Shown piece after piece: positions 23,700-64,000 of a stretch of 64,000 nucleotides of DNA. How positions within the stretch are numbered: the stretch's first letter is position 1; each line of letters opens with the position of its first letter. Position numbers and translations under genes: made by a program. The notes under the pieces are model-generated. The model searched no databases and had not been told where the DNA came from. It saw only the letters and a list, made by a program, of their open reading frames with translations. Source of the DNA: Octopus sinensis (lineage: Eukaryota); contig NC_043017.1 in the NCBI RefSeq assembly GCF_006345805.1, forward strand, positions 24,366,001-24,430,000, in the 5' to 3' direction.

Positions 23700-23884
23700 A
23701 TATATGAAATATATTTGTGTGTGTGTATGTGTACATGTATATATATATATATATAAGCATATATACACAAATATGTATATATATATATAAACATATATAC
23801 ACGTGTGTGTATATATATATATAAACATATATACACAAATGTATATATATATATATATAAACATATATACACATATATACACGA

Positions 23885-23930
<46 letters not shown>

Positions 23931-23943
23931 ATATATACACGAA

Positions 23944-23978
<35 letters not shown>

Positions 23979-23993
23979 TATATATATACACGA

Positions 23994-24026
<33 letters not shown>

Positions 24027-24135
24027 AGCATATACATACGTATATATACAAAAGTCTCTATATACATGTATGTGTATGTGTGCACATATATATATATATA
24101 TATATACACATACATATATACAAGTGTGTGAGCGC
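23700..24135. repeat. Compound (AT)n/(AC)n satellite with AAACATATATACAC higher-order units
   Basis: Direct reading. Confidence 0.95.
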
Positions 24136-26884: not shown

Positions 26885-28312
26885 ATATATATATATACAT
26901 ATATATATATGCAAACATATACATGTGTGTGTGTGTGTGTGTATACATATACATGTACATACAAACATTTATGTGTACATATATAAACTTTTCTTTCTAC
27001 CTGTGTAACATGTTTCCTAGTTCGCTTTTTTTGTTTTTTCTTTTACACACACCTTATCTGATTATTATCTTTATTATCAACATGAGCTTAATATACAGAT
27101 TAACAATAAGTTTCTGTTAATAATAAACTAAAAAGTCCCTTTCAGAAAATGCCATGGTGTCAGATGGGGGGGGGGTAGAGATGAACAGTGGGACGAAAGG
27201 GGCAGGTAGGGGGTGGACTAAAGACTGGAGAAAAGCTGGGTACAGAAAGGGCATCATCAGAGAAAGAAGTGGGGGAGCGTTGGAGAGGGCAGAAAACAAT
27301 ACTTTCAGTGTGTGTGTGTGTGTGTGTGTATAATAATAAAATAGTTTGATTTTAGTTTTGATGTCCACATCAAATATTAGAAAATATGCAATACAGGATC
27401 TTTGTTTCTTTATTTTTTTTTTTTCATTTTTTTTTTTTTGTTTTGTTTTGGCAAATTCTGGAGGGAAGAGGTAGAATTTGAATTGAAATGACGAAAAAAA
27501 AAAAAAAGGGAAAACAATCCCCACCTTCCAAATGGTATTCACAGATATCTTCCCACTTTCTTGCTTGCAATTTCGCCTCCTTTTTTATCATTGTTGCCTT
27601 CAGTATTGGTTGCTGTCAATTTAGAAGTTGACCACGTTTCTGATTTGTCCCCACCAGTCCACTCCACTCCCCAATAAATTTACTTGTTTTTTTTTTTGTT
27701 TTGTTTTTGTTTTGTTTCTGGGTTTTTTTATTTTTAATTAGTTGAGAAGCAAGTGAACATGCAGGCAATAAGGTGTTGCTGTTGTTGTTGTTGGTTGCTG
27801 CTGTTGTTGTTTGTCTCTAGCAAAGATATACATGAAGCCGAAACTGTAAAATGTTGTCATTTATACGGAGTGAATGATAGCGTTAAGTACAAAATTTACA
27901 GAAAAGCAATTTTTTCAAAGATATTTCAGAACTCATACCAACATAGCAGGATATTATTATTATTATTATTATTAATGTCTCATACTATATTTTCAAAAAT
28001 AAAATTAAATAAAGTTAAAAATAAAACAAATAAGCAACCCCCCCCCCATATATATATACCTATGGAAATATACACACAAATGTATATACATTTGTATATA
28101 CACATATACACACACACATGTATATATAAACACACATTCATATGTATATTTAAACAGACAAACATATGTAGATATATTACACACACACACACACGTACAT
28201 ATATATACACATATTCATATATATATATATATATATGTACACACATATTCATATATATACACACATACATATTCATATATATATATATATATATACATAC
28301 ACATACATATTC

Positions 28313-28343
<31 letters not shown>

Positions 28344-28659
28344 TATATATATACGCATACATATACACCCAAACATACATGTGTGTGAAGGAAGGATGAA
28401 AAGATGAGGATATGTCAGACTAGAATCTCCAGTATATTTTAAACACACACACACATACATACATACATACATACATACATACGTACATACACACGAAGTA
28501 AAATCTATAATAAAAGATTTATAAAATAAGGAAATAGAATTGTAGTAAGTAGTGATTCCTTCAGAAGAAGTACAGCAGACATTCTTCCATTGTCACCTCA
28601 GGTTAAAAAATTGTATGTGTGGATGGGTGTATATCATACACCATACATACATATGAATA

Positions 28660-28719
<60 letters not shown>

Positions 28720-30335
28720 CATATATGTATGTATATATATATATATGTATATGTATGTATATATATATATATATATATGCATGTGAGTGTGTGTATGAAA
28801 ATATAAATGCAATCCGAGCCATATTTTGATTTTTATATATCAATATTTTAAGTTTTATTCTTGCTGCTGTTACGGTTAAAAAAAAAAAAACAAACCCAAA
28901 ATAAACATAAAATGTAAAAAAAAAAAAAACAAAAAGAAAAAAAAGAATAAGTAATGGCAAAAACAGAAAAAAGAAATAATTCAAAAGGTTAAATAAATGT
29001 AAGAATTTGGGTTGGTTAAAGACGAAAGAATCCAAGAATTCCATTGATGGCTTCAAGTAACGAAATAGTTTCTTCCCGCCAATAGGATTAACTTTGCATA
29101 TTTATTTTTATCTTTCCTTTTCAATAGCCACTAGGTATATAAGGAAGAATGATTGTATGTATGTGCATGTGTGTGTGTGGTGTGTATAATTGCACTGACT
29201 CACACACATACACAAGAGTATGTATGTATATTCACACATACACAAGATTATGTATGTATACTGACATACACATTCTCTCTCTGTCTCTCTCTCTCTCTCA
29301 CATACACACACACACATGCATGCATACACTAACACTCACTCAAAAGTATGACAGTGTATTCACATCCCTGGATTCACAAACATATATATACACATTAGAG
29401 CACGTGTGTTTATTCACAAACACATATACACGTGTGTATATTCGCATTCATACACACACACACACACAAAGTTATATGTGCTGTGTTTGGAGTTTTGTTG
29501 GTGTTTATTAAAATTTCACCCAAGATCCATCCCCTCTCTCTCTCTCTCATATTGTGCAATTCTGATTCTTCAGGTGGGAAGAGTAGCAAAAGACAATCAA
29601 TATCCCACCCCGACTCCACCTAATTTTTTTTTCAAAATTTCTTATTAAAAATAACAACAATAATAAATGAATATAATAACGACATTAATAGTAATAATAA
29701 TATTAATGAGAATAATAATATTAATAATCATAATAATAATAATTATAATTATAATGGTAATCATCAGAACAAACAAAGGTAAAAGTTTGTTATATTCCTT
29801 ATTTCTTGTTTATGTAGCACCACCACCATCTCTGGTCACCATCCTCATCACCGCCATCATTGTCATCATCATCATCGTCATCACCACCACCACTACTATC
29901 ATCACCACTATCACTAAAACAGACTGTGATGATACAGATATCTTATTTTTGTCATTGGTTAGTTTTTACAAGTAGCAGTATTCAGAGTTGTTGCTTTGTC
30001 TTTTCGTGTTGTTTTTCTTTTTTATCTTTCCTCACCATTTTTTTTTTCCCAACTTGGTTTATTTGTTTTTTATTTTTAAATATATTTGCTTTTTTTTTTT
30101 CCCTTTATTTTCTTTCTTTCTTTCTTTCTGTTTTTTTTTTTTCTTTCCTCGTCCGTTTGTCTTCTTGTTCCATTTTGTCGTTATAAGGAAAAAAAAAAAA
30201 AAGGGAGGAGAAGATAGAAAGGAAAAGAAACAGGAGTTTGGTTTTCAAAAAAAAAAAAACAACCAAAAAACCAAAAGAAACCCTCGAACGGATTCCTTAA
30301 ATCGTCATCGTTCATGACAGTCAAACAAACTGCTG

Positions 30336-30541
30336 TTAAAGAAACGGATTGCTGGGTTGATTTGGCTGCTGTATACCAGGCTGTAGAGGTGTATTAAATG
30401 GAATGAGAGGTCTTGGGAGCACGTCAGCATTGTTCACCGAGGTGAAACTCTGTTGTTGAGACTGCTGCATTTGACGCAGGGGCACTCGGGCTGTAGATTG
30501 TTCAAAGGGGTTCGTTCCACTTCCGGTAAATGGGTTGGTGC
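30336..30541 (-). CDS. EPN: Epsin terminal coding exon (three NPF motifs, C-terminal NPFL)
   Basis: Acceptor TTTTTAG| at 30542 (phase 1); TNPFTGSGTNPF...SNPFL then TAA at 30338-30336. Confidence 0.92.
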
Positions 30542-31168
30542 CTAAAAAGGACAAAAATAAAGCAAAAGAAAAGAAAAAAAAAAAAGAAAATTATATTAAA
30601 AAATTTTTTTTTTTTGTGGAACGAAAAGAAAGAAAAACAACTTTTTGTTGTTGTTAAACAGTCTTAAAAATAAATGTTTAAAATTAATTACTTATTTTGA
30701 TATTACTAATTGACCTCAATTAGTATTTGAAAATGTGAAAGAAGAAAAAAATTGATGAAAATAATATCCACAAATGATACAAAAAACAAAAAGCAATTAA
30801 CTATAATTAATGGTTTCAAATTTTGGTACAAGGCCAGCAATTTTAGGGGATGAATAAACTGATTTTAGGGGATGGATAAACCGATTACATCAACCCCAAG
30901 ATAAAAGGCAAAGTCAACCACAACATGATTTGAGCTCTGAACAAGACAAACAGGAAGGAAAACTAGACATTTTGCCCAACTCACAATTCTGCCAGCTGAT
31001 AAATAATTATTGGTTCTAGGTTCAGTCCCAGTGCATGGGTTGGACAATTTGACTGAGGTCTGGAAAACCAGATGGCTGCACCAGGCTCCAATCTGATCTG
31101 GCAGAGTTTCTACAGCTGGATGCCCTTCCTAATGCCAACCACTCTGAGAGTGTATAATATATATTGGG

Positions 31169-31228
<60 letters not shown>

Positions 31229-32950: not shown

Positions 32951-34329
32951 AAAAAAAAAATATGCAGGAAGATAATTTTTGAACACACACGAAAGCTTGC
33001 TTCTTCCCATCCACATGATTTTGGATCAAGTCTCACTTGTATGTACATATTAACAGCATGTAATATGTACGTACCACCTGCCAGGTATGTGTTTAATAAT
33101 GTAAAACTGGTATATCCAATAATGTTACACCGCTCTATCTGGTGGATATTTAAGCAATGGGTTCATGGACGATTAATGGGTTGGACGGGAGCTGATCAAG
33201 GAGTGAAAAAAATGGCATATACACCCATTACCCATCTGTCCTCTTCAATCTCATTGTTGTTTTGCATAGGCAGACTCAGAAACGAAATGTTATAACAAAT
33301 CGGTGCTGGCAATAAATTTCTATAGAAAATCTGTGGAGATAACCATAACTTGCCAATTTGAATGAGAAGCATAAGTTGATTGCATCAACCCCAGTACATG
33401 ACTGGTACCCACCACCTTAATAATAATAACAACAACATCAATAACAATAATAACATAAATATCAACAATTTGGAAGTGTTCATTCACTGAGCAAAATACA
33501 TATATATATGAATATAAATGTTGAAGTTAATTGGTTAAAAAGAATTAGTGGATTTAAACAAGCATCGTTATAGCTATTATATACTTAATCAATATAAAGA
33601 GAAACAATATCATAACATTTATTTAATTTATAACAGTGAAAACAAAACAATCAAAATACTTCCAGGGCAAAATTTCACCATCAAAATATATTAAAATAGA
33701 AAAAAAAGAGAGAGAAAACTTTATTTTACCAAGAAAAATCCATGCACAAAAAAGCAATTACTATAAGCTTGAAAAAATTCAGACCACCAGAGTAGAGATT
33801 AATAATTAAAAAGGATGGGGGAGAGACAGAGAGAGAGGAAGATTCATATATGTTTATGTTTACTGTAAAACATCAATGTTTATAGCTTCCCAGATAGCTG
33901 TGAAGTCAAGGTGTTGGACCACTGACTGTATATGGTTGTGTATCCAAACCTTTCTTCCAGCCAGTGTGTGCTGTTGGTGTTGAGCAAGGGCTATAACTCT
34001 GCTCTGACTGTGAGAAGACAAAAAAAAAACAAAAAAATACTTGGACTGGTTTAGCAAAGTTAGCAAGGACATCCAGCTGTGAAAACAACACTCTCATTGA
34101 AAAGAAGAAGAAGAAGAAAAAAAAAATCCATACCAGCAAATGTTAGTATCAAGAAAATGGATATGTAAATGGTACACGCAAATATACGAAACACCAGAAG
34201 AAGAAGAAAATGGTAGCAATTAAAGGGGAGGGGAACTGTTAGAAGAAAACTTAACAAGCAAATAGTTCAAAAGAATCCAGATATGATGCAGTTTGTGTGC
34301 ATATGTAGCAAGTTTGTGCAAAAAAAAAA

Positions 34330-34629
34330 AAAAATTATATATATAAATATTTATAAAATACATATATATATTTTAAAATACACATATAATATATATATAA
34401 TACACATATATAATACATACATATATATATATAAATACACATATATAATATATATAATACACATATAATAATATATATATATATATATATAAAATACACA
34501 TATATATATATATATAATAATATATATATATACACATATATAATATATATATATAATACACATATATAATATATATATATATATAATACACATATATAAT
34601 ATATATATATATAATACACATATATAATA

Positions 34630-34671
<42 letters not shown>

Positions 34672-34703
34672 TATATATATAGTACACATATATAATATAT
34701 AAT

Positions 34704-34747
<44 letters not shown>

Positions 34748-34810
34748 TATATATATAGTACACATATATAATATATATAATACACATATATAATTATATA
34801 TATATATGAC
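34330..34810. repeat. Compound (AT)n satellite with ATAATACACATAT units
   Basis: Direct reading. Confidence 0.95.
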
Positions 34811-36154
34811 ATATATGCATTTAGATGAGTGAGTGATCAGAAGATGGCATTGGTGAATTTCATTTTTTTGGTAAGTAAATAATTAATATAGTGAAGAATA
34901 AAGTGCTAAAATATTACAACCAAAACGCAACATGTATAGCAAACAGAAAATGCATATGATGCAATTGAGAATACACTCGGCAACATACACACACGCACGC
35001 ACATAAGTGTAGTAACTATACACTGAAGGCACACAGAGGATGAACTATTTAAAACATTGCTCCCACCTGTAAGTATAGATATTGTTTAACATTTGAAGTT
35101 GTGTTGGGTGAAATCTCATGAAGCAGAAGCAGAAATACAATACGTTGCAGTCTCCAAACAACTCAACAATAAATAACTATGGTAGTCCTTGTAGGATTAC
35201 AAGGATGTAAAATGCATAGTGGATAGATATGTCTCTAATCTTATACTATGAGTGTTGTTAAATGCCCGTCTATTTCAAAACCCACAAGCTCATCAAACCA
35301 GAGCTTATACTAGTTTTCAAAGCGATAACAAACCACCCCAGCTTCTATTGATTCAAACTTTCTGTTTAAAAGATAAACAAGTTGAAACCTTCCATCAAAA
35401 TTTCATGTGAAATTATATTCCAAACACTATTTTAATAATGACTGTTATTTAGCTAAATTCGTCTGAAAGAGTTAAAGTGATAAGATTCTCTCTTGTAAAG
35501 TCAGCCCCAAGTTGCCAACAGGTACTCCCTTTCATCTAAGTAGTATGGAACAATAGGAAATGTATTTTATTCAAGGACATAATGTATGACCTGGTCCAAG
35601 AACCAAATATGTGGCCTAACAATCACAAGCCCAAAATTAATTGCTAGCTGTCATGTTTTGTTAAGAGAGAGTGAGTATGTCTGTGTGTGTTTATTGATAT
35701 CTGTGAACATAACAGAAAATATTTGTAAATAAGATTAGCAAATAACAGACAACTCCAATTGCAGTGTGGCCATTTCAAATATCTATTTTGATAAATTGAC
35801 ATGGTTGGACTAGAAAGACAGTCAGGAGGGGGGGAGATCACCTACTGTCCACTATTGAGTAGGAGCCAAAGGATCTTCAAACACATTTCACTCTAACTAG
35901 TGAGAAAGGGTTTACTTAACAGAAATTGCTCAGGGATTAAGAAATGAAATTAGGTTGGAGAGGAGTATAAACAGGCTTATTTTAAAGTTAAAAAAAAAAA
36001 AGAGGCAAGAAGTTGGAAAGAAAAGGGGTGAGATAATAGGAAAAAAAATAAGTCTTCAAGCCAAGGAAAATATCAATAAAATTTTTGCTTTGTTTCTTTT
36101 CACCCCTATTCCATTGTTTGTGTTGCTCCTTCTGCAGATTATCCATAGTCTTAC

Positions 36155-36241
36155 CTTCAAATATAGATGGTGATGTCCTGGACAGTTGACTGTATTTGTT
36201 GTCATTTTTTAGCTGATTAGGGTCACGGGCAGCATTCATTT
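36155..36241 (-). CDS. Candidate alternative epsin exon (87 nt, phase 1-1; E-MNAARDPNQLKNDNKYSQLSRTSPSIFE-G)
   Basis: Acceptor CTTCTCATGTATCTGTCCTAG| and donor GAAG|GTAAGA; stop-free and in frame with both flanking epsin exons. No homology support. Confidence 0.45.
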
Positions 36242-37559
36242 CTAGGACAGATACATGAGAAGCAGCTGGTCAATATAGGGGTCAGAAGCACAAGAGGAAT
36301 AACAAAGCTTAATTGCATAGAAGCTGACCACTTTGAGAGTCCAGCCATTCTTGTTCTTCTTAAAAATTACTGTTAATATTACTCGAGAAATTTAAAACCC
36401 AGATTATCACAATGCACATTTCATATATATATATTTCTGGCTGACAGAGCAATCATCAGATCGGTGTAGCAATTCAAGAGTATTTCAGGTATGTACAATC
36501 TGATGATTACTGCCTGACAAGAAAGTTGAAATAATAAAAAAAAAGTAGAGAAGTTTATTTAATTCTGATACAATAAATATCCATTCTGCTTCAAGTATCG
36601 TGCACTCTTTGCATTGATCATAACACCACTTGCAAATGCAAACATACAAACACACACACAACATTCACTTGGACAAAGCCTAAAAGTAAAAAAAAAAAGT
36701 GTCATCTCATTACTCTATAATCAGTAAAAATTCTATTCTTCTTTCTCCCTACAACAATTAATTAATAGATAGTTATCCTCCACTCTAGGTGATTGTGAAG
36801 AGAAGACATACAGCTTCAGGAGCCTGTCAACAATTACTAAGAGAATATTAAATGTTCATTCTGGTCTAATTTGAAAAGGTAAAAAAAAAAGCTGATATGA
36901 ATTACACTTATTTTGCGGAAAAGTAGAAACAGTTATGTTTAGTATCAAAATTTCAAAGAATTGTGCTTTTATGATCTCCATTAGATAAATATATTTTTCA
37001 AAACTTTCATAACAAATTTTGTATAAGACATTCTAGATCAGAAGTTCAATAGCTCAATGCCTTCTTCTTTGCATTAATTATTTAACCACAAATTCACAAA
37101 AGTGTCTTGTTTACACTAACCAGATTATGGAAGTAATGTTAATTCATGAACATATTTATCTGTGGTATAGAACTTTTAGTCTCTCAGCCATAATAATTCT
37201 TTGTACTTGTATTTACTGCCATTGTATTAAATAAAATCTTATTTTTGAGCTCGTGTTTGTATCCATCCACTAATCCTGGGAGGATCATGTCGACAGAGTA
37301 TAGGGTCCTCGGGTACTGCTTCTATAAAGGTCATATAAACAAAATAATCATCACAACAGTGGTGGTGCCCCAGCATGACTGCAGCTTTCAAGCTGAAACA
37401 AGTTGAAGAGTCAAAGAGTTTTTCCTGGCACAATTCCCAAGCATGACCAACTGAAGCTATGATATTATCTAACAATCTTGCTCTTGCTCTAGCCCTAGGT
37501 CTCCTGCCAAGTTGGCTTGGCTTAAAGAATCTGTCTAGTGATTCCTTCCTGCTGTATTA

Positions 37560-45879: not shown

Positions 45880-47060
45880 AAATAAATAAATAAATAATAA
45901 TAATAATTTTTTCAACTATAGGCAGAAGACCCGAAATTTTGAGGGATGGGGGGGTACTCAATTACATAATATCCTAGTGCTCAACTGATAACCATATCAC
46001 TGACCCCCAAAAGGATGAAAGGCAAAAATCAATCACAGCGGAATTTGAACTCCAAGTAAAACCAGAAAAAATGCTACAAAGCATTTTGTCCAGTGTGCTA
46101 ATAATAATAATAATAATAATAACAATAATTATGGTTTCAAATTTTGGCACAAGGCCTGCAATTTTGGGGCGGGGTAAGTCAATTACATTCACCCCAGTGC
46201 TCAAGTGGTACTTAGTTTATTGACCTCGAAAGAGTGAAAGGCAAAGTCCACCTTCGTGGAATTTGAACTGGACTGAATAGCATTAAGCATTTTGCCTAGT
46301 GTGCCAACGATTCCACCAGATTTCTGTCTCAGCTTGGTATAATAATAATAATAATAATAATTAATAATAATAATAATTAATAATAATAATAATAATAATG
46401 GCTTCAAATTTTGACAAAAGTCTACCAATTTTAGGGAAAGATAAGTTGATAACATTGACCCCAGTGCATGACTGTTACTTATTTTATCAACTCTGAAAGG
46501 ATGAAAGGCAGAATTTGAACTCAAAGCGTGAAGACAGATGGAATTCCGCAAAACATTTTGTGCAGCATACTAACAATTCTGCTAGCTCACTGCCTTTCTT
46601 AATAATAGTTTCAAATTTTGGCACAAGGCTAGCAAGTTCAGAGGAGGGGTAAGTTGATCGTATTGCCCCAGTACTCAAATAGCAGTTATTTTATTGACCC
46701 CAAAAGGGGCATTTGAACTCAGAATGTAGAAATGCTTAGAAACATTTCATCTGGTGTGCAAACAATTCCGCTAGTTTGCCGCCCCGACTGCCTTTCTTAA
46801 TAATGATGATAATAATTATAATAATCCTTTCTACTAAAGGCACAAGGCTTGACATTTTGGGGAAGAGGACCAGACGATTAACATCGATCCCCAGTGTTTC
46901 ACTGGTACTTAATTTATTGCCCCCAATAGGATGAAAGGCAAAACCGGCCTTGGCAGAAATTGAACTCAGAACGTAAAACCAGACGAAATACCACTAATAT
47001 TTTGCCAGGCATGCTAACAGTTCTGTCAGCTAGCCACCTTAATAATAAGTATAATAATAT
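45880..47060 (-). mobile_element. Head-to-tail stack of about 6 SINE family 2 variants
   Basis: Co-oriented copies separated by (AAT)n tracts. Confidence 0.85.
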
Positions 47061-47083
47061 TAATAATTATAATATTTATATAT

Positions 47084-47118
<35 letters not shown>

Positions 47119-48044
47119 TTCTCCTGTTTACCTAAATGATCAAGTTGTTTTGGGCAGTGATACAAAAGAATTCTTTTTGTACAAAGCAAGATCTCTTGAC
47201 TTGTGCCACAATAATACACACCCTGCAATATGGTTGGTGAACAAGTAGAGAAGGTTTAGGAAGGAGAGGTCTCTTTAGTCCTGTTTCATCAAGGACACAA
47301 GCTCTCAAGTGCTGAAGCAATGAGTATTCTTTATAGAGGTTGTTGAATAATGTTGAGGGTTAAAACATTTTAAGTATATTCTTAGCAAGAACATGACAAT
47401 TTCTTTGGTGCTGGTGCCACAATAAAATTTACACAGGACACACTGTAAAATTGTTGATGTTAGGAATAGCATTCAACCACAGATACCAAGCCAAAGATGA
47501 AACATTCAAGTATTACCCTCACAGATGGGTGGAAGGACATGTGGGCAGTCATTATTATCACTATCATTTAAAGTCCATCTTCCATGCCAGCATGGGTTTA
47601 ACAGAAGCTGGCAAGCCAGAGGATTGCGCCAAGCTCCACTGTTTGTTTTGGCAAGGCCTTTACAGCTGTATGTCCTTCCTAACACCAACCACTTTCCAGA
47701 GTGGACTAGGTGGTTTTTACAGCTGGATTCCCTTCCTAATGCCAACCACTTTACAGAGTGGACTGGGTGGTTTTTATGTGATACCAGCAGTGTATCCCAA
47801 TGCGGAGTGTGACAATTAATTCAATGCATAGAGAACAGACATAATTTACTATGGAAGGCAGAGGGAAAATGTGTTTGTTATGAAGTGTATTCTGGTTTTG
47901 GAACATGTACACAACATCGCTATGTCCTAAAAGGTGATGAAAAATTTGGCAACAGAAAGGGCGTTCAACCATAATACACCACCACAGAAAACCCATCCAA
48001 CTCATGCCAGCATGGAAAAACTGACATAAAACAATTGATGTCAA

Positions 48045-49265: not shown

Positions 49266-49427
49266 CTTTAGGTAACGAAGGTGAGGTCTTAGATACCAGG
49301 TTGTCCAAATTAACTAGTGCTGCGTTCTCGCCTAGGAAATCTTTGGGTGTTTTCTTCTTATTTTGCTCCTGATCAGGTAAATCTTTACCAACACCAGACA
49401 TAAGCCAGGGATCTGAAGTTGGTGTTC
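49266..49427 (-). CDS. EPN: Epsin exon (DPW, KTPKDFLGENAALVNLDNLV)
   Basis: Acceptor AACAG| at 49428 and donor AAAG|GTAAT at 49265, phase 1-1. Matches vertebrate epsin KTPESFLGPNAALVDLDSLV as recalled. Too short for the ORF track. Confidence 0.93.
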
Positions 49428-49867: not shown

Positions 49868-49886
49868 GTCTAAACAATGATTAATA

Positions 49887-49937
<51 letters not shown>

Positions 49938-50117
49938 GTACACATAGCAGTCAAGTATTACAACACCAATGATAACAACAACAACAATAATAATAATAAA
50001 AGTAATGATTCTAATATCTACTGCAAATATCATAGGGAGTCAACAATCAGCATGCAGGGTACAGCTTTCCAATATCAAACATCAAACAAAAGAAAAAAAT
50101 ATACACTAGCAACTTAC

Positions 50118-50450
50118 CGCTACCCATAATAAGTTTCCCTCCTCCTGCCGCCTGAGGACCAAATCCATCTAAGGCAGTAGATGTCTCCTCTATGCTCAGG
50201 GCAGGAGAAGTACTTGCTTTCCGATTAACCAACATATCGAAGGCGTCATCTATACTACTGGTGCCCATCCCATTAGTTGTGGTCACTGAAGTACCTGTTG
50301 AAGTTACGATTAAAGTATTTGGCATTGTGTGTACCGGAGTCTGACCAGTAGCTGGTACCGTGCTAGGTTCCCATGGACTCTGTGGTGTTGTTGCTGGTTG
50401 TGGCTGCGAACCTGTGTTGATAACAGTCCAAGGATCTGACTGATGAGAAC
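50118..50450 (-). CDS. EPN: Epsin exon (DPW/SPW, S/T-rich)
   Basis: Acceptor TGTCAG| at 50451 and donor G|GTAAGT at 50117, phase 1-1. Confidence 0.9.
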
Positions 50451-51077
50451 CTGACAAATTTTCACCTTACACAAATTAACAACGAAGGAGGCACTAAAGT
50501 CACCATCATCATCATCATCAACATCACAAATACAACTACAAAAACAACAGCTTTAAATGAACAACATACAAATGAAAATAATGAGCATATCATAAAGACA
50601 AAAAGACAGTTACACTTCATGTCAGAAAAACAGACGATGAAGGATGCACTAAAAATTGGCTGACTCCATGGAAAAATAAGCATCACAAAGAAAGAAGAAG
50701 AAAAAAACAAAAACTACAGACACCACTTGGTTAATCATGTCAACAAATAACCACATTAACACCAGTGCATAAGACAAATTTCAAGAAATGTAGTGGAAAG
50801 TGACAATATAAAACTGCATTGGGAGGGTCTCTTTCACATTTGCAAGCAATGAAAATCATTGAATATTAGAGAAAACAATGGACAAAATATTTACATTTCA
50901 AATGCTGTCTTACACAAAAGTGTGTGTATGTGTGTGTGTGTGTGTGTGTATATTTATATATATCTATATATATATGTATGGTAGTATTATAGATATTTTA
51001 GCGAGTATAACAATTCCGGCAAATCAACAACAATGATTGTCATATAAAAAGGAAAACATTCTACCAAATGAATTCTA

Positions 51078-61131: not shown

Positions 61132-64000
61132 TATATAAATTGTACATATGAGATGCATTCCAAAAGCTTTGAACTTTTTTTAGGAGAGGCAGTTATGACT
61201 GCCTTAGGTTATTGTAATCTTAGTATATCATTACTATACATCTAAAAAGCTGACCTGCCAACTTTTGTCATTCTGGATTGAAGGAAATGGCTATAACAGC
61301 ACTTTGAACACTCACTATTAAACACTGCCACTATTAAACAGATGCCATGAGGACTGAACCCGGAACCATGTGGTTGAGTGACAAATAACAGAAAATACCA
61401 TAAAATAAAAAGGTCTAAGTACTGATTGATATACACACATACACAACACAAAATACATTTAAATTCACACACACAAAGAGGTAATTAAGAGGCAAAATGC
61501 TAAGTGTTTTTAAGGAGCTTCAGTCACTAACCTCAACTGTACTTCATACCACCCGCACATTTAGATCATACTCATTACTTTAATGTGTCTTAGTCAACGA
61601 GGCTGAATCATTAAATACTCTCTCACTTAACAGCTGATTGTCTACGTAATAATATTCTTACATTAAAATATTTCGATTAAATACAAAGAAAGTAATCAAA
61701 AAGAAACTCACAGTTTATATACAACCCTAAGATTTAAAAAGAGAAAAATTTAAGTATACCAAATGACAATGTTAGTATGCCAAGATGTAACTGTAGGCAC
61801 AGCTGTAGGGTGAAGTTTGTTTCTATATTGGAGACCTATGCTGTGTGACTATCTCTCTGATGGTTTCTTTGAGTCAGGCTTCCCTGTAACTAGAAATTTT
61901 TTTCATGGAGAATTAGAAATGAAGGATACTGTCTACAAGACTGGTACTCATTAAGAACCATCACTTGAAACCATGAAGGAGACAATAGCACATATACAGG
62001 ATGGTCAGGTAGTAGATACAGATTGAATGATGTATTTTCAAGGTCTGTTTGTGACTGACTACATTGGCACCTAAAACCAGTCAGCAAAAGTGTGTTACAC
62101 ACTACCACGTTATGTTCACTTACAAGTGATAGCTTTGAGTTTTATTTTACGGTTTTTATTTGTATTTTCTTCTACAGGGGAAACTGGTGTAACCCACTTG
62201 CCTTAAGGACAACACAAAATTAATTACTGATATTGAAATAGTTGAGACCTCTGTGTTGTATGCAGAGGTGAGTAATACAATCTGTCTCAGGTAATGTTCC
62301 ACACAGTCCTTGATTTAAACGTAAACATTAATGAAGGCCTTTCCAAAGGATGTCATTTGAATAAAAGCTTGTCATAATGGATAGGAAATAGAATGTAATA
62401 CAAAAGCATCATTAAGTGATGAGCCGTCAAATAGCTTCCATCCTCCTACATAGTAGGGGATTTCCTACTAACAAGCCAGTAATGGTAATACATTTACCAA
62501 TTAGTATCTTCAAATAATCCCAGTTTATGGAGCACTAATGAAGAAACCAAGTACAATACTTAACAAGAATGATACTGAGTGTGCGTTTTAGATAGAGAGA
62601 GAGAATGAATAAGTGAAAATGATGGAGAGTGAGAAAGAGAAAGGAGCGAACAAGTGAGCAAAAATAGGAGAGAGAAAATGAGAGATAGACAACAAGTGAG
62701 CAATAGTAGAAGAGAGAGAGAGAGAGAGAGAGAGTGAGTGAGTGAGTGAGAAACCATTCAAAGAGAATTTTTGTCTGAAGCCTGCAAAATGGTTAGTCAA
62801 CTTCCAATTCAAATTTTATCCTAAGAATCTACAAAGAACTGAAATCTCTTGTGTTTTTCTCAGCCTATCAACAAACTTGCAGTTTTGCTTTCAAGTGAAA
62901 GCACACCACTTGGCCACTAATTCTACACTATACCAATTTTATAATTTAATTTTTTAAGTTTCTATCAGCAACTTTTAAAGATCCTACAAATTTCTACCTT
63001 TCAACTTCAATTCAACTTTGACATCCATATCATCCTTCTCCTTCCTCCGCTTCTTTTCCCTCCAAGCTTTCCAGTCATCACCAAATCCTCCAGGCCCTCT
63101 TTCCTCATCACATGACCAAGAAATCTCAGTTGCTTGGCCCTTATCTCATGGCAACAGTTTCCTATTTACTGCAAGGAAATTGTCTATCAATAAACAACTG
63201 TAATAACTGAAGAGAATAAATCTTTTACTTTTCTCAATCCATCAGGCAAGTGCTAAGTTGAGATAAATGTTTACTTTTGATAAACTAGTCTACCACAGAC
63301 AGTTTTCCCTACTTCTAGAAGAAAGTGAATTAAACACAATGAACCAACTAACATTTGTCAATATAATAGTGTTCGCACTGCTTACAGTGAAAACTATACC
63401 ACTTGCAATACAACTAGAACTTGTCCTTGGAAAGTTAGATTCAATTAGTGGTATAGACACGCTGCTACCAGAAAAAGGATATTGCTTGCAAAATGAACTC
63501 CTTAACCACACAGCTATGCCTGTGCATAGTAGCATTGACATTTGTTATGGCTTTCATGACTGGAGGAAGTTATCCTCAGGTTAGAGACCTGGTATAAATG
63601 AGTTCAACAAAGTGAATTGTGGATCTTTTCGGTTTGAATGGCAGTTTTTAACATAATTTCTAGGTGAGTAAAAAATTTTAAGCTTTGTATACTGGTAGAA
63701 TGTGTTTATAAAACATCTATTTCTCTTGGCTTTATTGAGAAAATTCTATAGTTTGTAAGATATTTGTTGTTTTTTTTTCTTCAATTTCTGCAATTTCAAC
63801 CAATTACTGACGTCCATTGAGGTAAAAAACATTCTGTGCCGTATGAATATGTCCCTCGTTTAAGAAACAGATTGGGTTTATTTACATTTGTGAAGAAAAA
63901 AAAGATACCCTTCCCCCCACCCCTAACCATAAAACAGATTGAAATGCAATAGATCGATACTAGGGTCATAATTATGGGTGACAATTTCATATTACACCAC

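Follow-up and report, generated by a model that had tools for sequence, protein, structure and literature searches.

A conserved 87-nt cassette exon in the last intron of the octopus epsin-2 gene

We analysed a 64,000-nt stretch of Octopus sinensis DNA (contig NC_043017.1, positions 24,366,001 to 24,430,000), referred to as the window in this text, with all positions counted from its first base. Its minus strand carries the part of an epsin gene that encodes the tail; the exons for ENTH are beyond its limits. Once spliced, the exons in the window encode two UIM-like stretches, several DPW motifs, one LVNLD segment and three NPF motifs (the Pfam match to UIM reaches 18 bits, under the cut-off of 21). 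The proteins whose tails equal these exons carry the ENTH domain PF01417, and the source records name them epsin-2. Our subject is an 87-nt alternative cassette exon of this gene at 36241-36155 (minus strand, phase 1-1, stop-free), located in the 18,724-nt intron that precedes the last exon. A preliminary description of the locus, made from the letters of the DNA alone, had proposed this segment as part of a second 3' end of the gene or, as a fallback, as a cassette of 29 amino acids.

The intron is bordered upstream by a constitutive exon of 162 nt (49427-49266, minus strand, phase 1-1), which carries the clathrin-box-like LVNLD, has LVNLDNLVSKTSPSLPK at its end and closes at 49266 with one codon base left over (...SPSLPK/G). 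This exon was found in every cephalopod model. The last exon begins at 30541 and is the splice partner both of the cassette and of exon 49427-49266. Its coding part (30541-30336, minus strand) reads GTNPFTGSGTNPF...NPFL and contains the three NPF motifs and the stop codon TAA at 30338-30336. Together with the G carried over from exon 49427-49266, the 29 codons of the cassette encode EMNAARDPNQLKNDNKYSQLSRTSPSIFE, and the last base of the cassette is the first base of a Gly codon that the last exon completes. With the cassette spliced in, the open frame is ...SLPK-EMNAARDPNQLKNDNKYSQLSRTSPSIFE-GTNPF.... The segment fits the phase-1 junction between 49266 and 30541, as had been proposed: the frame stays open, and it is kept on inclusion as well as on skipping (87 nt, phase 1-1, no stop).

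The strong splice signals ascribed to the segment were confirmed. The acceptor reads ...ttctcatgtatctgtcctag/A and the donor GAAG/gtaaga. In the region of the 3' splice site (36290-36242, minus strand), the AG at 36243-36242 is accompanied by a pyrimidine-rich tract, and two sequences, cttctGAc and attGAc, resemble branch points, by consensus match only. The 5' splice site GTAAGA occupies 36154-36149 on the minus strand, directly after the final exon bases ...GAAG. We scored these sites with a generic position-weight matrix, so that all scores in this text are rough. The cassette acceptor reached 7.2 bits; the real acceptors of the gene span -2.6 to 11.5 bits, the highest value being that of the last exon. 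The cassette donor reached 10.2 bits, and the real donors span 4.7 to 10.4 bits. No more than two GT sites of the 18,724-nt intron reach the score of the cassette donor. Among the 706 stop-free, frame-compatible AG..GT segments of 27-300 nt in this intron, the cassette ranks first, and an equally good pseudo-exon appeared in 7 of 300 dinucleotide-preserving shuffles of the intron sequence.

Usage of the exon was examined in 31 cephalopod epsin-2 protein models and assembled mRNAs. A word-indexed search with a 151-aa C-terminal junction peptide missed the annotated cephalopod epsins. It returned only two open reading frame (ORF) calls, on Logan contigs that are collinear with the window intron and are therefore genomic DNA of a related species. 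The annotated proteins were found with a 442-aa tail query. The homologs retrieved were O. sinensis epsin-2 X1-X6, six O. vulgaris models, O. bimaculoides X1-X5, two Argonauta hians models, the cuttlefish EPN and further Logan mRNAs. The mRNA evidence consists of intronless Logan contigs of 2-6 kb with a complete ENTH-to-NPFL reading frame. A scan of a representative protein library with the spliced 442-aa tail also yielded P0003, a 637-aa ENTH protein. P0003 and its two cluster mates are frames of intronless Logan contigs of ~2 kb (L007-L009) from three runs; because these contigs are intronless, we regard the three as assembled mRNAs. They read ...SLPK-DMNTACDPNQLKNDNKYSHLPRTSPCIFE-AGTNPF....

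The cassette is included in 20 of the 31 models and mRNAs and skipped in the other 11. The exact octopus peptide stands between ...SLPK and GTNPF... in O. sinensis X1-X4 and X6, in O. vulgaris CAI9738234, CAI9738236 and CAI9738237, and in O. bimaculoides X1-X3 and X5. It is missing from O. sinensis X5, O. bimaculoides X4, three O. vulgaris models and two UniProt entries of O. bimaculoides. Both annotated models of Argonauta hians skip the cassette, and so does P0158, a 602-aa frame on a 2,185-nt mRNA contig of a related octopus. A homolog of the cassette is present in the EPN model of the cuttlefish Acanthosepion pharaonis and in all 11 full-length mRNA contigs that are closest to this model. 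The fallback of the preliminary description, a 29-aa cassette, thus holds, since inclusion and skipping forms are both annotated and both occur in mRNA assemblies.

All 20 inclusion forms join the cassette directly to the NPF last exon. Every one of the 31 sequences ends in that exon (...SNPFL) with its three NPF motifs, and none of them terminates in or after the cassette. The leading proposal of the preliminary description, an alternative last exon that yields an NPF-less epsin, is not upheld by this set. The useful result is therefore a correction: instead of providing a second 3' end, the segment is a cassette, and the NPF motifs are retained.

Absence of the exon from other octopods had been named, together with a lack of junction reads or exonic coverage, as a ground for giving it up; it was found in other Octopus species and in Argonauta. 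The intron DNA of the window is 98.4% identical to O. vulgaris OX597834.1, which marks it as a very close relative or another haplotype, and 92.4% identical to O. bimaculoides. A third Octopus species shares 85 of the 87 cassette nucleotides, the two differences being synonymous. Around the exon, a block of ~550 nt (36430-35880) shows 96.9% identity to this third species, compared with 85.6-88.8% for the intron outside the block (Fisher p = 5e-12). The upstream intronic flank (36430-36242, minus strand) is 94-98% identical to the third species, and the downstream flank (36154-35880, minus strand) is conserved within Octopus. Between 36129 and 36055, a purine-rich stretch with a GGGG run shows 100% identity between the window and the third species; long pyrimidine runs follow it. 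An alignment of four Octopus genomes displayed the same peak, from ~36415 to 35880, with upstream columns 86-98% identical from ~36415 downstream. Its only variable cassette columns are the two synonymous ones, and the acceptor region 36290-36242 is identical across all four genomes. Below ~35880, conservation is back to background. Exon 49427-49266 is likewise well conserved in the third species (158 of 162 nt, 97.5%), but identity drops to 88-90% immediately outside it.

In the more distant Argonauta hians, we found an unannotated cassette homolog of 96 nt (61238-61333 of BAAFZT010000054.1, L010) that encodes the peptide ELNAATEPSLLKNDHKYDSHALRITSPPSVFE. It occupies the corresponding position in the gene, 6.3 kb upstream of the last exon, has kept the AG and a GTAAGG donor, contains no stop and differs in length by in-frame indels only. 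The donor core GTAAG is shared by all Octopus species and Argonauta. Argonauta also keeps the ~45 nt directly upstream of the exon (ATTGACCAGC...TCTGT..CCTAG); the remaining flanks are not conserved. A comparison of its first 17 codons with Octopus gave seven nonsynonymous changes and one synonymous change.

From octopus to cuttlefish, the core DPNQLKNDNKYS-L-RTSP-IFE of the insert is conserved. The epsins of abalone, mussel, oyster, scallop, Aplysia, Lingula and annelids contain no insert and pass from LVNLD.L to the first NPF in 6-15 residues. A nemertean protein and one JGI protein have longer linkers at this place, with no evident likeness to the cassette. Among the sequences sampled, the insert is thus coleoid-specific.

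We compared nonsynonymous (pN) and synonymous (pS) divergence between octopus and a decapodiform-like mRNA (L007). The cassette has a pN of 0.086 and a pS of 0.41, exon 49427-49266 a pN of 0.080 and a pS of 0.86, and the first 27 codons of the last exon a pN of 0.033 and a pS of 0.87. The amino acid sequence of the cassette is under purifying selection and about as constrained as its neighbours. Its pS is about half that of the flanking constitutive exons, and this low value points to constraint at the RNA level inside the exon. Strong conservation of the intronic flanks together with low synonymous divergence is the usual mark of regulated alternative exons.

We therefore read 36241-36155 as an alternatively used, internal and frame-preserving cassette exon of cephalopod epsin-2 that, when included, is spliced from 49266 and on to 30541, and we put the probability of this reading at about 0.9. 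The exon exists, products with and without it exist, it always joins the NPF exon, and it is conserved across coleoid cephalopods. Inclusion lengthens the disordered tail by 29 residues, placed after the distal LVNLD segment and ahead of the first NPF, and leaves all three NPF motifs in place; skipping joins 49266 straight to 30541. The ~190 nt upstream, the ~270 nt downstream and the constrained synonymous sites are candidates for splicing-regulatory sequence and could set inclusion by tissue or stage. In the protein, the insert may alter the spacing of the linker or add a short binding or phosphorylation site. In this way it might tune the interaction of the tail with clathrin, with EH-domain partners or with actin. 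The RTSP within the insert is a possible candidate for a proline-directed (S/T-P) phosphorylation site.

Several points weigh against this reading. The RefSeq XP models are computed predictions, of a kind that rests on RNA-seq. All 11 decapodiform-like transcripts include the cassette and no skipped form was seen among them, so it may be constitutive rather than alternative in that lineage. In Argonauta, where both models skip the exon, its constraint may have been relaxed or changed, although the numbers are small. The conserved flanks could belong to an unrelated non-coding element around the exon. Finally, no known peptide motif was identified in the insert (no DPW, NPF or clathrin box).

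The alternative that survives best is that the exon is constitutive in vivo and that forms without it reflect low-level splicing noise or errors of annotation. The 20 inclusion forms among the 31 models and mRNAs fit this view, as do the decapodiform-like mRNA contigs, all 11 of which include the exon, and assembled contigs run straight through it. However, the full-length mRNA contig P0158 of a related octopus skips the exon, skipped forms occur in three independent annotations (O. sinensis, O. bimaculoides and O. vulgaris), and both Argonauta models skip it as well. Moreover, the conserved flanks and the low pS of the cassette are absent from the constitutive neighbour 49427-49266. A constitutive exon with noisy skipping is possible for decapodiforms but unlikely for Octopus, given the three annotations and the one mRNA contig that skip it, and we consider it an improbable account overall.

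A second 3' end is less probable still. It would require that the cassette sometimes serves as a composite or alternative last exon with intronic polyadenylation, which would produce an epsin that keeps its UIM, DPW and clathrin sites and lacks the NPF motifs. The transcript could either read through the donor at 36155 to a stop at 35988 or splice to 35875, and polyadenylation could follow, for example, the AATAAA at 33623. The coordinates cited for this model are all correct. The unspliced frame does stop at 35990-35988, and splicing to 35875/35874 does give DPLAPTQ and a stop codon. The minus-strand AATAAA at 33623-33618 is present, and it is found with its surroundings in O. vulgaris and O. 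bimaculoides. The statement that the stretch lacks recognisable transposons holds as far as tested: self-BLAST of 33400-37300 found the (AT/TATATGTG)n array only, and apart from this microsatellite the interval has no repeat copies elsewhere in the window. The ~270 nt past the donor are conserved within Octopus.

Nevertheless, no NPF-less or cassette-terminated product occurs among the 31 models and mRNAs, although a product missing from assemblies may still exist. In a related Octopus, the read-through frame shows two amino acid changes directly behind the donor (T>A and N>D) and then, ahead of its stop, loses 3 nt and undergoes a frameshift, whereas the 87-nt exon itself has only two synonymous changes. 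These changes show that the coding constraint ends at the donor. The acceptor at 35875 is as weak as described (-6.8 bits, no pyrimidine tract). AATAAA occurs 78 times on the minus strand of the window, or about once per 820 nt. This is chance frequency, so the copy at 33623 need not by itself mark a second 3' end; the sequence around it is at the background level of conservation to which the intron returns below ~35880. In Argonauta the downstream flank is not conserved, but the donor GTAAG is. The read-through frame was matched by P0002 alone, an ORF predicted from genomic contigs that are unspliced. We hold the second 3' end to be very unlikely, and give equally poor odds to a composite terminal exon that exists besides the cassette use, in which the conserved ~270 nt would be its 3' untranslated region (UTR) and not splicing control. 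If such a form did exist, it would be a minor NPF-less epsin-2 uncoupled from Eps15 and intersectin.

That the 550-nt block is mainly another element (an intronic enhancer, a small RNA gene or an antisense exon) with an incidental open frame would suit flanks that are as conserved as the exon within Octopus, but as an explanation of the exon it is already largely refuted and hardly credible, because the exon occurs in mature mRNAs and protein models and, in Argonauta, conservation is confined to the exon with its splice sites.

Other candidates for the block were tried and rejected. For a structured RNA, miRNA or snoRNA, Rfam gave only MIR2118, at 22.9 bits (E = 0.38) against a gathering score of 85. 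The RNA fold of the block is no more stable than that of shuffled sequences (z = +2.1 sense, +0.6 antisense), which also speaks against a long editing-type duplex formed by exon and flanks. An exonised transposon was rejected as far as tested, the block being single-copy in the window. For a gene on the plus strand, the only long open frame is the low-complexity complement of poly-T runs.

The (AT)n/(TATATGTG)n microsatellite at 34330-34830 extends over ~500 nt inside the proposed 3' UTR, with a GC content down to 0.21. Similar arrays are located at 23700-24120, 28050-28780, ~31150-31225, ~47040-47120 and ~49880-49950. On the other side of the cassette, a 187-aa ORF at 38202-37639 on the minus strand (…YLKLYTAMVRPHLEFASSVWNPY…LESVQRRATK…) matched no family in a Pfam search; it presumably resembles the C-terminal tail of a non-LTR retrotransposon ORF2. 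The region ~38267-37558 has no counterpart in the contig of the third species (L001). Situated ~1.4 kb upstream of the cassette, it was probably inserted in one lineage only.

Further upstream in the window, the epsin tail is encoded by the minus-strand exons 60352-60153, with the two UIM-like stretches, 57968-57626, with DPW motifs, and 50450-50118 (333 nt, phase 1-1). A search of PDB sequences with the epsin tail gave no match. The exon that ends at 50118 has three in-frame alternative acceptors on the minus strand, at 50465, 50450 and 50411, which give ...STPS-ENLSGSHQSDPWTVINTGSQPQ, ...STPS-SHQSDPWTVINTGSQPQ or ...STPS-SQPQ in annotated isoforms; the shortest of the three forms loses one DPW motif of the AP-2-binding type. 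The same exon is wholly skipped (...STP-R-TPTSDPW) in O. sinensis X6, O. bimaculoides X5 and O. vulgaris CAI9738233 and CAI9738236. Some of the isoforms that lack it include the 87-nt cassette and others do not, which suggests that the two events are independent. In the N-terminal half of the protein, outside the window, a 20-residue alternative segment, QFAQGKSERLSDGDSDDKDR, stands between ENTH and the UIMs in some Octopus and cuttlefish isoforms and is missing from others. A metagenome scan gave one contig, from an invertebrate (L006, JAAUXV010057048.1, 2,519 nt), which encodes an epsin tail as a single exon, from the DPW repeats through NPFLM and a stop codon. It has no cassette, and no intron at the position of the octopus 18.7-kb intron.

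The cassette is already annotated in public gene models; a literature search found no paper that describes this exon. Beyond the annotation, we can add that the insert is, among the sequences sampled, coleoid-specific with a conserved core, that its synonymous sites and, in Octopus, its intronic flanks are unusually conserved, which suggests regulated splicing, and that Argonauta has an unannotated homolog. If the exon turns out to be included in a tissue-specific way, such as in neural tissue, it would offer a small handle on the tuning of the epsin tail in cephalopods.

The closest known counterparts are the annotated isoforms of O. sinensis (XP_029649080-89), O. vulgaris (CAI9738233-38) and O. 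bimaculoides (XP_014788042-48), which represent the same gene and the same exon and include forms with and without the cassette. The tail encoded in the window (exons 60352-30339 with the cassette) is identical to that of O. sinensis X2 and O. vulgaris CAI9738234. In a wider comparison, the exon resembles the general class of regulated cassette exons in the disordered tails of endocytic adaptors: it is short, its length is a multiple of three, the flanking intron is conserved and synonymous divergence is low. It differs from this class in that the octopus insert is without a recognised DPW, NPF or clathrin-box motif. The tails of vertebrate epsins 1-3 display the same order of motifs (UIM, DPW, clathrin boxes, NPF), and the octopus cassette is placed in this order immediately upstream of the NPF region.

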